Virus record (IMG/VR): IMGVR_UViG_3300033145_003233 | Span: 124,001-188,000 of that record | Length of the DNA stretch: 64,000 nt | Reading direction: 5' to 3' (one strand) | Shown here: piece after piece, positions 5,717-51,639 of the stretch | How the letters are laid out: every line of letters begins with the position of its first letter | Numbering within the stretch: position 1 is the first letter of the stretch | Program-made: the position numbers and the translations under genes | Notes under the pieces: generated by a model | Databases searched by the model: none | What the model was told of the DNA's origin: nothing | What the model saw: the letters and a program-made list of their open reading frames with translations, nothing else

Positions 5717-6590
5717 CTTTTAATAAAGGATGATCTTTCCAAAAAATATGTTTCTTATTTATTCTGTTCTTAAAATTATTAACTATTTTTTTATATTTTC
5801 CTGGATATGGTTTTTTATATACTCCATCACAATACCCTTTTTCGAAAAAACGCCCTTCAGGTCCATATCTAATATTTCCATTATAATCGGGAGGAGGGGG
5901 ATCATTTTGATAAGGGTCTAAAAAGGCACGATCTTGGTCTTCTTTATATAATAAAGATTTCTTATAGATGGCAGAATAAAAACGGGGGGCACGATGCCTG
6001 TCACAATTTATTCTACGACCCTTATTTATAAATGTTAAATTATTATCTTGTAATACACAAGATTGAAATGCTATTTTATGTGTAATTCTGGCAATTGCCT
6101 CTGTCCACCATATCGAAATGTGGTCAAAACCAGTAAACATGGGAAAACATATGTCAAGAGCATCTATATGATATGCCAACATAGCACATTCAGTGCGATA
6201 TGTGGTTTCAGTTTGTTCTTCTATTTCTCTTATCTTTTTATATTTGAGTCTTCCCTCATAATAAACGCATCCTATAGCTGGCTCATACTTTAATAAAAAG
6301 TCATCAAATGTCTTCCACGGTTTTTTTTTAATTAATAGTTTATTTCTTACATATAATTCAACATCATCATCTATCTGAACATAATATAAGTATTTTTTAG
6401 GAACTATTTCTATTAATTTATTTCTGCCAGTAGACCATGTGCTATCAGGAAAAAATATATTGTTTTTATGCTCTACTGGTTTTTTATAAGAAAGGATATA
6501 AACATCTCTTCCCATATCCTCTAATACTTTAACATAATCAGGAATAGTATCTGTTGTTTGAGCTAAATATACTATGTCTTTATCCATCAT
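5709..6590 (-). CDS. GT-A fold glycosyltransferase paralog 6
   Basis: GRNKL, YYVQIDDD. Confidence 0.72.
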   Translation of the reverse strand: MMDKDIVYLAQTTDTIPDYVKVLEDMGRDVYILSYKKPVEHKNNIFFPDSTWSTGRNKLIEIVPKKYLYYVQIDDDVELYVRNKLLIKKKPWKTFDDFLLKYEPAIGCVYYEGRLKYKKIREIEEQTETTYRTECAMLAYHIDALDICFPMFTGFDHISIWWTEAIARITHKIAFQSCVLQDNNLTFINKGRRINCDRHRAPRFYSAIYKKSLLYKEDQDRAFLDPYQNDPPPPDYNGNIRYGPEGRFFEKGYCDGVYKKPYPGKYKKIVNNFKNRINKKHIFWKDHPLLKDE

Positions 6591-7404
6591 TCAATAAAGG
6601 ATGATCTTTCCATATAACATGTTTTTTATTTACTTTATTCTTAAATCCTTTTACCATCTTTTTGTATTTTCCTAGATAAGGTTTTTTATATTCTTTCTCT
6701 GAAAAACGATTCTCCCATGATACATACGCTTCTTTTTTGTCTGCCTCCAATAATAAAGAATCTTGAAACATCTTATATAAGAAGTTAAAATCTACTATTC
6801 TTTTATATTTTTTATGATGCCTGTGAAACCTATTATTTATTATGAGCCTATTACATTGTAATATATAAGGATAAAAAGCTAACATTCTAGTAAGTAAAAG
6901 GGTCCCACCTGTCCAATACCATGTAACCTCATTAAATCCTCCAAATATGGGAAAACATAAATCTAAAGTATCTTTATGAAGGCCAGAAATAATACACTCA
7001 TATTCTTTAACTGTGTTAATTTCCTTGTTATCGTCTAAATATGAGACAAACCCACCATAAGAGCTATTATCACAAGAAACCGTTCCGATAGCGGGCAGAT
7101 GCTCTAATAAAAAATTCTCATATACTTTCCAAGGATGTTTATCATTAGGATATTTATCTTTCCTAATTAATAACTCTAAATCATCATCTAAAAACACATA
7201 ATATAAATATTTCTTAGGAACTATCTCTGCCAATTTATTCCTGCCTTCTGACCATGCACAATCAAACAAGAAGGTGTTATTCTTATGGTTAACTGGTTTT
7301 TTATAAGAAAGAATATAAACGTCTCTACCCATATCTTCTAATACCTGAACGTAATCGGGAATGTAGTCGGGTGTTTGAACTAAATATGCTATTTCTTTAC
7401 TCAT
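6580..7404 (-). CDS. GT-A fold glycosyltransferase paralog 5
   Basis: GRNKL, YYVFLDDD. Confidence 0.72.
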   Translation of the reverse strand: MSKEIAYLVQTPDYIPDYVQVLEDMGRDVYILSYKKPVNHKNNTFLFDCAWSEGRNKLAEIVPKKYLYYVFLDDDLELLIRKDKYPNDKHPWKVYENFLLEHLPAIGTVSCDNSSYGGFVSYLDDNKEINTVKEYECIISGLHKDTLDLCFPIFGGFNEVTWYWTGGTLLLTRMLAFYPYILQCNRLIINNRFHRHHKKYKRIVDFNFLYKMFQDSLLLEADKKEAYVSWENRFSEKEYKKPYLGKYKKMVKGFKNKVNKKHVIWKDHPLLNDG

Positions 7405-47757: not shown

Positions 47758-47763
47758 TATAAT

Positions 47764-47836
47764 ATCCCCGGAAGGACTTGAACCCTCACAAACCCAGATT
47801 CGTAGTCTGGTGCTCTGTCCATTTGAGCTACGGGGA
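47764..47836 (-). tRNA. tRNA-Arg(ACG)
   Basis: CCAGA-CTACGAA-TCTGG. Confidence 0.9.
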
Positions 47837-47843
47837 CAATAAA

Positions 47844-49163: not shown

Positions 49164-49368
49164 ACATTCTAGTAAGTTTCCATTTTTGAATTTTTTTCTC
49201 CATTTTTTCTTCAGCTTCTTCTTTATCTCGACCCCAAGTTTCTCCGAAATCATCTTCTATTTTAGCATCATTACAATACATAGATTGGACTTTGGTAACA
49301 TAATAATATCTATTGCCAATTGGTGGTAACAATTCTCGACTATCTATATAATATTCATACTTATTCAT
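49156..49368 (-). CDS. hypothetical protein
   Basis: GGGAG RBS; stop lies in tRNA-half anticodon loop. Confidence 0.7.
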   Translation of the reverse strand: MNKYEYYIDSRELLPPIGNRYYYVTKVQSMYCNDAKIEDDFGETWGRDKEEAEEKMEKKIQKWKLTRMSS

Positions 49369-49397
49369 TATGTTCTCCCTTGATTATACAAATGAAA

Positions 49398-49474
49398 CAC
49401 CTCAGGTAGGGATCGAACCCACATGTGTCCATTTACCCTTTCATCTGCTTAGAAGGCAGAGGGGATACTGAGGC
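49398..49474 (-). tRNA. atypical tRNA-Arg(TCT) lacking a normal D-arm
   Basis: acceptor GCCTCAG/CTGAGGT, TCTGC-CTTCTAA-GCAGA directly after a 7-nt connector, T-arm GTGGG-TTCGATC-CCTAC. Confidence 0.75.
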
Positions 49475-49479
49475 AAAAC

Positions 49480-50172
49480 CTAACTTTTTACCCATTTTCT
49501 TATTGAGTTATCAGAAACACCATATTTCCTACCAACAGCACAATAGTTAGTTTCTTCTATTTCTTGTAACAACCGTTCTTTAGACGGTCTATTTTTAACT
49601 TTTCTTTGTTCTATATCGACACAGTTTTTACACATATCTAATATAGAATATTTTTTTATTTCTTTTCCACATTTTTTACAATTATGCTTTTTTCTATTTT
49701 TTCTTCCAGCAAAAGTTTCTTGTTGACTATTGCAATTAGGACATAATAATCTTAAATTTTCTAATCTATGATCATTATTAACTCCATTTATATGATCTAA
49801 AACCATTACTAAATTTTGATTGTTATGAATTGGTAATTGATTACAAATAACACATCTATTTTCTAACATCCCATTTTGTAATAATCTTTTTTTAAGATTT
49901 CCTCTATCATAAGTAGAATTCTCTATCATAGCCTCTTTCAAAGGAAGAGATCTTTCTGGAAATTTTCTGTTTTTATTACTATTTAAACCTAGAGATATAT
50001 GAGAATAATCGATACTTTCTTCATCCAGTCTTTTTTTTAAAGCCTTATAATTACTACCTGCTATAACTAAATCAAAATACCTAATAATGGCAGCAATGCT
50101 ATCACTTTTAGCAACTATATTCTTTAATTCTTCGGTAGATATGCCCCAGATTATACTTGTTCTTTTTCTCAT
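49480..50172 (-). CDS. HNH endonuclease
   Basis: LDHINGVNNDHRLENLRLLCPNCNSQ; C-terminal HTH. Confidence 0.9.
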   Translation of the reverse strand: MRKRTSIIWGISTEELKNIVAKSDSIAAIIRYFDLVIAGSNYKALKKRLDEESIDYSHISLGLNSNKNRKFPERSLPLKEAMIENSTYDRGNLKKRLLQNGMLENRCVICNQLPIHNNQNLVMVLDHINGVNNDHRLENLRLLCPNCNSQQETFAGRKNRKKHNCKKCGKEIKKYSILDMCKNCVDIEQRKVKNRPSKERLLQEIEETNYCAVGRKYGVSDNSIRKWVKS

Positions 50173-50955: not shown

Positions 50956-51462
50956 TTAAAAGTTAAATAGATTCCTATAATAATTAGGATCCTTCATTTT
51001 TATCTCATCTTCTATTTCTATATGGCAATTTGAACAATACATATCACATTTATTAAATTCTTCAAGTATTGTCTCCCATTTTTTCGACCAAAGATTATTA
51101 ATTGTTAATCCAAAATTCTTTTGAGAAGGATCTCGATGATGAAATACCAATGCTTTAACATTCTTTTTATATCCACATCTTTTACAAGAGCCTCCCGCTT
51201 TTGCTACTAATTCTTGCTTTTTATTCCATCCTCTTTTATATATATTCCCTCTATGTTTTTGTTTAGATTCTTCACTCCAACAATAATAAGGCCCTTTTTT
51301 CTTAGCAGGACGACTAGGATCATCAGATTTTGTATTATGACCTCTATAGGGAGAACATTTTAAACAAAATTTTCTATTTCCAAGGTTCTTATTTTTTCCA
51401 TCAATTTTTGTCCAGTGAGGGATATATTCCCCACATTTTCTGCAATCTCTTTTATTACTCAT
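50956..51462 (-). CDS. HNH endonuclease
   Basis: CKRCGY..ALVFHH..KCDMYCSNCHIE. Confidence 0.88.
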   Translation of the reverse strand: MSNKRDCRKCGEYIPHWTKIDGKNKNLGNRKFCLKCSPYRGHNTKSDDPSRPAKKKGPYYCWSEESKQKHRGNIYKRGWNKKQELVAKAGGSCKRCGYKKNVKALVFHHRDPSQKNFGLTINNLWSKKWETILEEFNKCDMYCSNCHIEIEDEIKMKDPNYYRNLFNF

Positions 51463-51554: not shown

Positions 51555-51639
51555 TGAGGGTAGGAGGATTCGAACCTCCAGCGTCCTTACGGATCCGGGT
51601 TAAAAGCCCGGTGCAGCCTACCGTATCTGCAACACCCCC
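51555..51639 (-). tRNA. tRNA-Lys(TTT) with long variable arm
   Basis: CCGGG-CTTTTAA-CCCGG; 15-nt variable region with TCC-GTAA-GGA hairpin. Confidence 0.85.

Follow-up and report, generated by a model that had tools for sequence, protein, structure and literature searches.

Outside animal mitochondria, cloverleaf connectivity is treated as universal for tRNAs, and a paper from 2024 states that all known bacterial tRNAs adopt it (PMC11551756). D-armless mitochondrial tRNAs, such as mammalian tRNA-Ser(AGY) and nematode tRNA-Ser, have lost the D-loop and the elbow formed by the D- and T-loops, are shorter and flexible, and need co-evolved partners (PMC7609411, PMC4013460). The allo-tRNAs and the 8/4 or 9/3 tRNAs of bacteria and their phages have altered stem lengths but retain cloverleaf connectivity (PMC5389517), and class II tRNAs (Leu, Ser, bacterial Tyr) carry a long variable arm next to a normal D arm. 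Phage tRNAs that resist host tRNA nucleases differ from host tRNAs by point changes in the anticodon loop (PMC10264068; PARIS-neutralising tRNA, PMC11464382). Here we describe a tRNA-Arg(UCU) gene of a 548-kb phage in which, by contrast, two blocks of the cloverleaf have exchanged places, while the L-shape is apparently kept. The gene belongs to a widespread and almost entirely unannotated family of phage tRNAs, of which we found no prior description in the literature searched. A 2020 review of non-canonical tRNAs does not mention phages, a 2017 survey of novel cloverleaf tRNAs reports 8/4 and 9/3 forms only, and Rfam 15 has no family for this architecture.

A tRNA-Arg(UCU) gene without a D arm before the anticodon arm

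We analyzed a window of 64,000 nucleotides (positions 124,001 to 188,000) from the IMG/VR virus record IMGVR_UViG_3300033145_003233, which is 547,943 bp long and has a G+C content of 33.6%. A first-pass annotation of the sequence had described a tRNA-Arg(UCU) in which the D-loop is apparently moved to the 3' side of the anticodon arm, and its parse of the minus strand proved to be exact (Table 1). ARAGORN finds 27 tRNAs in the window but does not call this one. The tRNA model of Rfam (RF00005) reports it at 30.0 bits against a gathering score of 29, treating the D arm as deleted and 18 nt after the anticodon arm as an insertion. Apart from tRNA, Rfam searches over 49300-49600 with E-values up to 10 gave only chance lncRNA fragments. 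The 7-bp acceptor stem (with a G1-U72 wobble), the 5-bp anticodon stem with a 7-nt loop and U33, and the 5-bp T stem are otherwise as in ordinary tRNAs, although the G1-U72 pair and the lack of an encoded CCA are tolerable rather than ideal features. The genome does carry a PF01743 (CCA-adding / poly(A) polymerase family) domain elsewhere.

The annotation had also noted that this is the only UCU tRNA of the window, and this holds for the whole genome, since none of its 29 ARAGORN tRNAs has the anticodon UCU. AGA makes up 58% of the Arg codons (25.8 per 1000) in ORFs of 200 aa or more. The gene lies in a minus-strand array of tRNAs interrupted by small ORFs, and a 70-aa ORF starts about 30 nt downstream. 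Pfam found nothing for the flanking ORFs of the window. Clustering of the ORFs within 4 kb of 174 family members gave no cluster present in more than 34 loci, the representative of the largest cluster being HNH-like, and no protein family is consistently adjacent to the members.

Table 1. Coordinates of the rearranged tRNA-Arg(UCU) gene, its segments and neighboring features in the window. RNA positions are counted from the 5' end of the gene.
Feature	Coordinates	Strand	RNA positions and sequence	Observations
Whole gene, rewired tRNA-Arg(UCU)	49398..49474	-	77 nt	No CCA encoded; discriminator G followed by UUU
Acceptor stem, 5' strand	49468..49474	-	1-7, GCCUCAG	Pairs with 49399-49405; all 7 pairs covary across the family
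U8 A9	49466..49467	-	UA	UA in 83/83 members, although not part of the search pattern
Segment in place of the canonical D-stem 3' strand (positions 22-25)	49462..49465	-	10-13, UCCC	Leads into C (position 26 equivalent, 49461) and the anticodon stem
Anticodon arm	49444..49460	-	15-31, UCUGC CUUCUAA GCAGA	Anticodon UCU at 49451-49453; four of the five stem pairs covary
Linker, N44 and G45 equivalents plus inserted AAA spacer	49439..49443	-	32-36, UGAAA	NGAAA in 82 of 83 members; G33, A35 and A36 invariant although outside the first search pattern
Segment in place of the canonical D-stem 5' strand (positions 10-13)	49435..49438	-	37-40, GGGU	
D-loop	49426..49434	-	41-49, AAAUGGACA	A14 A15 A16 U17 G18 G19 A20 C20a A21; A20 equivalent at 49428
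Equivalents of variable-loop positions 46-48	49423..49425	-	50-52, CAU	U52 corresponds to Y48
T arm	49406..49422	-	GUGGG UUCGAUC CCUAC	
Acceptor stem, 3' strand, and discriminator G73	49398..49405	-	CUGAGGU (49399-49405) and G (49398)	G/A73 fits arginine identity (PMC9976931)
HNH homing-endonuclease-like ORF (230 aa), upstream neighbor, not part of the RNA	49480..50172	-		Ends 5 nt before the tRNA; phrog_10822, E 4.2e-38; DNA similarity to HNH endonuclease genes of T4-like phages
Second HNH-like ORF	50956..51462			
Canonical tRNA-Arg(ACG) of the same phage	47762..47838	-		D arm GCUC-AAAUGGACA-GAGC

The gene is one member of a large phage family

To find out whether this gene is an isolated case, we searched 50,697 phage records by blastn with 93 nt covering the locus. 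This gave same-length, ungapped matches across the unusual region in very different phages, namely the crAss-like Kehishuvirus 'tikkala', about 45 Streptomyces phages, Vibrio phages and the Microbacterium phage Zooman. The matches lie in unannotated gaps inside or beside tRNA clusters, and a first alignment showed a conserved UAUCYCC...NGAAAGRGUA..GG...CAY core with varying anticodons. Two independent IUPAC pattern scans of IMG/VR, one anchored in the 3' half and one in the 5' half, were then performed. In the fetched loci we counted 185 members in 178 loci, of which ARAGORN calls only 4 members. Canonical tRNAs are located nearby in 158 of the 178 loci, but only 5 members share their anticodon with a canonical neighbor. 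Nonetheless, non-redundancy is not universal, as some cultured phages, such as Stanimal, carry both a rewired and a canonical tRNA-Ile(GAU). With a typical Ile member as query, 80 further phage records were found, 77 of them from Streptomyces, and the match is unannotated in nearly all of these and labeled 'tRNA-Leu' in the records of one phage, EGole. Cultured systems with members include Streptomyces cluster BE phages and Kehishuvirus on Bacteroides cellulosilyticus. The family is in effect phage-specific. In 185,579 prokaryote species genomes the specific pattern finds 19 places, of which 16 are true members according to the covariance model, and nearly all of these are on MAG contigs with tRNA clusters, while one is in a 15-tRNA island on a contig of an Achromobacter isolate. 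No matches were found in E. coli genomes or plasmids.

A covariance model, R1, was built from 91 distinct members of 77 nt that share the order acceptor-UA-U[CYC]C-anticodon arm-NGAAA-[GRG]U-D-loop-CAY-T arm-acceptor. The gene in the window scores 83.4 bits on this model with a full-length alignment without gaps, whereas canonical tRNAs in the window score 27 bits or less. It should be noted that the effective sequence number of the model is low (1.97).

Covariation supports the rearranged structure

We next tested a structure with 21 pairs (acceptor 7, D-like 3, anticodon 5, 15-48 1, and T 5) on the 91 distinct members. In this alignment 93.6% of the cells are paired against 66.8% in shuffles, none of 500 shuffles being as high, and 509 double-sided changes were observed against 155 expected. 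Sliding the 3' partner by 1 to 3 columns in either direction drops the pairing to 36-49%. The pairing of CCC with GGG around the anticodon arm, which the first-pass annotation had proposed, is real: the helix generally reads CYC/GRG, its middle pair (columns 12-38) is CG in 56 and UA in 35 members with no mismatch, and rarer members have ACC/GGU and CGU/ACG. The second base of the D-loop-like segment and the base just before the T stem (columns 42-52) read AU in 68 members, GC in 21 and other combinations in 2, which is the signature of the R15-Y48 Levitt pair. An unbiased mutual-information scan ranked only pairs of the model at the top, R15-Y48 being the top pair outside the helices, and the next link was between the middle anticodon base and the base after GG. 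Because the members were gathered with sequence patterns, some of the invariance is imposed by ascertainment. However, the invariants of the 3' half are not an artefact of the search pattern, since members collected with a 5'-only pattern keep UA before the loop (133/134), GG (130/134) and CA (125/134).

In one respect the first-pass annotation was not supported, namely that the D-loop-like AAAUGG lies in a hairpin. The single-sequence minimum free energy structure, which is unremarkable (z = −1.64), does prefer a local mini-hairpin (43-45/50-52), but this has no covariation support (63.0% paired against 62.7% in shuffles). The segment is a loop whose closing stem is the CCC/GGG helix.

These data bear on the possibility that the locus is a decaying pseudogene or an assembly artefact, for instance a tRNA-Arg gene scrambled by recombination next to a homing endonuclease. 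The borderline Rfam score, the missing ARAGORN call, the HNH endonuclease gene immediately upstream and the weak folding z-score would fit such a view. Yet, the same 77-nt architecture recurs in about 180 viral contigs and about 80-90 cultured phage records from unrelated lineages, with compensatory changes in every helix and in the 15-48 pair, and a pseudogene would not keep covariation or the coupling of identity elements described below. We therefore regard this explanation as effectively refuted, unless the family alignment were an artefact of contaminated assemblies.

Identity elements track the anticodon

The anticodons found on this scaffold are UAU (most), GAU and one CAU for Ile, and UCU, CCU, ACG, CCG and UCG for Arg. 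The base after GG (position 20) is A in every Arg member, and U in all 70 Ile members (UAU, GAU) of the first set, while in the larger set collected with the 5'-only pattern one of the 101 UAU members has C. The discriminator is A in all 70 Ile members of the first set. In the larger set it is A in 94 of 101 UAU members and in all 16 GAU members, the remaining 7 UAU members reading C, and several of the 36 rows that fail the 3' pattern are D-loop length variants that shift the register at that column. In Arg members the discriminator is mostly G or A. The published arginine identity set consists of A20, C35, U/C36 and A/G73, with A20 as the main determinant for E. coli ArgRS (PMC9976931), and the gene in the window has all four. 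Moreover, its nine-base loop AAAUGGACA is identical to the D-loop of the canonical tRNA-Arg(ACG) of this phage and differs at one base from that of its tRNA-Arg(CCU). A tree based on 73 columns is weak. It does not reject a single Arg clade (p-AU 0.59), but does not establish it either.

An alternative view is that the RNA is a tRNA-shaped decoy, or another non-translational tRNA-like RNA, that soaks up or misleads a host tRNA-targeting nuclease, a modification enzyme or a sensor. Phage tRNAs are known to counter tRNA-targeting defences (PMC10264068, PMC11464382), the architecture is odd enough to be missed by ARAGORN, and phages that carry it also carry tRNA-repair genes, namely RNA ligase and polynucleotide kinase in Stanimal. 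We nevertheless consider this unlikely, because a decoy does not need synthetase identity elements to track the anticodon, yet A20 goes with C35 and U20 with Ile anticodons in every member of the first set, with the few exceptions mentioned for the larger set. In addition, the acceptor stem is an intact, freely covarying 7-bp helix with a proper discriminator, the members are largely non-redundant with neighboring canonical anticodons, and in this phage the gene fills the gap for the most used Arg codon.

Two internal blocks are transposed

The sequence maps exactly onto canonical tRNA numbering. The canonical order [1-9][10-21][22-45][46-76] has become [1-9][22-45]-AAA-[10-21][46-76]. After U8 A9 the chain enters the strand that normally forms the 3' half of the D stem, runs through position 26 and the whole anticodon arm (27-43) to positions 44-45, crosses the AAA spacer, and only then reaches the 5' half of the D stem, the D-loop (14-21, with 20a) and positions 46-48 before the T arm. 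To test this mapping, we exchanged the two blocks in silico and removed the AAA. ARAGORN then called a normal cloverleaf with the expected anticodon in 133 of 133 members, including the gene in the window, against 0 of 133 in the native order. Six deliberately shifted boundary choices gave 23 to 128 of 133. For the window this exchange yields a tRNA-Arg(UCU) with the D stem GGGU/UCCC and a 5-nt variable loop.

The tertiary contacts that can be expected from yeast tRNA-Phe (9 with 12-23, 45 with 10-25, 21 with 8-14, and 46 with 13-22) would imply that each new junction (9 to 22, 45 to 10, 21 to 46) joins residues that already are neighbors in space. This would explain how an L-shape could be kept, and why only the 45-to-10 junction needs a spacer. 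Accordingly, we infer from sequence logic, rather than from modelling or probing, the usual three-dimensional core with the D stem stacked on the anticodon stem, U8-A14, R15-Y48, and G18 G19 against the T loop. It is conceivable that the tRNA instead has a flexible shape like that of D-armless mitochondrial tRNAs, in which an extended anticodon helix is present, a real elbow is absent and the 13-nt segment acts only as a connector. On paper the RNA is a three-way junction with a long single-stranded connector, the CCC/GGG helix could simply extend the anticodon stem as proposed for mitochondrial tRNA-Ser(AGY) (reviewed in PMC7609411), and E. coli machinery can use an engineered D-armless tRNA (PMC11551756). 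This seems improbable, however, as the connector is not free to vary: it keeps the A14, R15, G18 G19 and A21 equivalents together with a canonical T loop, R15 covaries with Y48 exactly as in L-shaped tRNAs, the segment is identical to a real D-loop in the same phage, and the block lengths map one-to-one on canonical numbering.

Taken together, the most likely reading is that the locus encodes a working elongator tRNA-Arg(UCU) with transposed D-arm wiring, which serves as the only decoder of this AT-rich phage for its commonest Arg codon, AGA, and probably decodes AGG as well. Direct evidence for transcription, processing, CCA addition, aminoacylation or decoding is lacking, and we assign this reading a probability of roughly 0.8. 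We infer that the tRNA would be processed from a polycistronic transcript like its neighbors, given CCA, and charged by the host ArgRS through A20, C35, U36 and G73. A plausible origin, also inferred, is a partial tandem duplication of [10-45] followed by loss of the outer copies, with subsequent spread between phages and switching between Ile and Arg identity. Possible reasons for the rewiring are escape from a tRNA nuclease or modification enzyme, discrimination from host tRNAs, or a frozen accident carried around by mobile tRNA cassettes. The first-pass annotation suggested that the shape could evade anticodon nucleases or alter modification, which remains speculation. A broader version of this idea, which we regard as doubtful though not excluded, is that the rewiring is adaptive: it would keep the surfaces read by synthetases, EF-Tu and the ribosome, but break the backbone paths (9-10, 21-22, 45-46) that some host tRNA nuclease, quality-control RNase or modification enzyme needs, or that a phage-encoded host-tRNA-degrading enzyme uses to tell self from host, so that decoders for AUA, AGA and AGG would survive when ordinary tRNAs are destroyed or mis-modified.

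A natural, widespread family that relocates the D-arm strands yet keeps every tertiary-contact nucleotide would show that the tRNA fold does not depend on one chain order, and would reveal which tRNA-binding proteins need backbone continuity in the D and variable region. It also offers a possible scaffold for orthogonal tRNA engineering. As about 77 curated Streptomyces phage genomes leave the gene unannotated, codon-supply analyses of phages have been missing AUA, AGA and AGG decoders.

Comparison with known tRNA systems

Canonical bacterial and phage tRNA-Arg(UCU) genes share with this gene the 7-bp acceptor stem, U8 A9, the anticodon arm with the loop CUUCUAA, the T arm with UUCGAUC, the D-loop sequence A-R-N-N-G-G-A20-N-A, the 15-48 pair, the G/A73 discriminator and the role of supplying a rare-codon decoder to an AT-rich phage. 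The difference lies in the order of the segments along the chain, as the D-stem 5' strand and the D-loop lie 3' of the anticodon arm, the D stem closes around the anticodon arm, and an extra AAA spacer is present.

D-armless mitochondrial tRNAs likewise have no D hairpin between position 9 and the anticodon stem, and a helix extending the anticodon stem is formed between the 5' connector and the 3' region. In the present gene, however, every D-arm nucleotide is retained and only relocated, including a full 9-nt D-loop with GG, the length is a normal 77 nt, and the setting is phage and bacterial translation. Circularly permuted tRNA genes, which probably occur in Cyanidioschyzon merolae, also have their segments in a non-canonical order in the DNA, but in that case the whole gene would be permuted and RNA processing would restore an ordinary cloverleaf. 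Here the acceptor strands are at the two ends of the gene as usual and two internal blocks are transposed, which is not a circular permutation, and no plausible processing route would restore the canonical order, so the mature RNA itself should be rewired.

With class II tRNAs the gene shares a long stretch (21 nt) between the anticodon stem and the T stem, but class II tRNAs keep a normal D arm and their extra region is a hairpin, whereas here there is no D arm 5' of the anticodon arm, and the extra region shows no hairpin covariation but carries the D-loop. The allo-tRNAs and 8/4 or 9/3 tRNAs are, like this family, naturally occurring non-standard architectures found in metagenomes and phage tRNA clusters with varied anticodons on one scaffold, yet this family keeps the 7/5 stems and changes the connectivity. 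Finally, the phage tRNAs that resist host nucleases are also borne in clusters, and a counter-defence rationale is possible in both cases, but here the anticodon loop is standard and the body is rewired.

Genomic context of the rewired tRNA gene

In the window, HNH homing-endonuclease-like ORFs are interspersed in the tRNA array, and the first of these shares DNA similarity with HNH genes of T4-like phages and of a 595-kb uncultured phage. These ORFs could help to move tRNA cassettes between phages. The tRNA-Lys(UUU) called by ARAGORN in the window is unusually long for a class I tRNA, and it may carry an insertion or intron. Outside the window, the phage genome encodes a PF01743 domain inside an 843-aa open frame, which is relevant because the rewired tRNA has no encoded CCA.

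Features in the window and in other genomes.
Sequence	Coordinates	Strand	Feature	Match or score
Window	49480-50172	-	HNH homing-endonuclease-like ORF	phrog_10822, E 4e-38
Window	50956-51462	-	HNH homing-endonuclease-like ORF	phrog_2255, E 3e-26
Window	51555-51639	-	tRNA-Lys(UUU), 85 nt	ARAGORN call
Phage genome (G000:C1, locus L191)	290564-290983	-	PF01743 (tRNA CCA-adding / poly(A) polymerase family) domain	87.9 bits
Streptomyces phage Stanimal OP021680.1 (60000-105000, locus L190)	74460-74523		Rewired tRNA, unannotated, just after a 'nucleotidyl transferase' gene	
Streptomyces phage Stanimal OP021680.1 (60000-105000, locus L190)	about 91431-91507		Rewired tRNA, unannotated, anticodon CCU	
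Achromobacter anxifer LMG 26857, NZ_CAHLAR010000005.1 (locus L132)	6534-6610		Rewired tRNA-Arg(CCG)	
Locus L023	2864-2942		Divergent relative	39-49 bits
Locus L075	5487-5565		Divergent relative	39-49 bits
Locus L133	4553-4629		Divergent relative	39-49 bits
Locus L003	295-378		Divergent relative	39-49 bits
Locus L106	4396-4472		Divergent relative	85 bits

Rewired tRNAs in other genomes

The curated genome of Stanimal has two rewired tRNAs that are not annotated, and canonical Ile(UAU) and Ile(GAU) tRNAs, a tmRNA, a Ro-like protein, an RNA ligase and a polynucleotide kinase are annotated in the same genome. The last two form a tRNA-repair-type gene set. The only hit in an isolate genome was found in A. 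anxifer, where the rewired tRNA sits in an 8-kb island with 15 ARAGORN tRNAs and a tmRNA. This is probably a prophage or phage-derived island, and it also contains an 86-nt tRNA-Arg(CCG) call and a tRNA with a 2-base 'anticodon' call.

The divergent relatives appear to share the same topology with other D-stem sequences (CGU/ACG, ACC/GGU) or a 7-nt longer linker (Vibrio phage 424E50-1), which suggests that the class is broader than the pattern-defined core. One member found by the 5' pattern (locus L157, IMG/VR 3300001097_000021) carries anticodon CAU with U20 and A73, and it may be a lysidine-dependent tRNA-Ile2 or a Met tRNA on the rewired scaffold.

We also considered the canonical tRNA-Arg, -Ile and -Met genes near members in the IMG/VR loci (L006-L189). 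Among these, Arg(UCU) is the most frequent, with 91 occurrences. Many phages therefore pair a rewired AUA decoder with an ordinary AGA decoder, whereas the phage of the window is in the minority that puts Arg(UCU) itself on the rewired scaffold.
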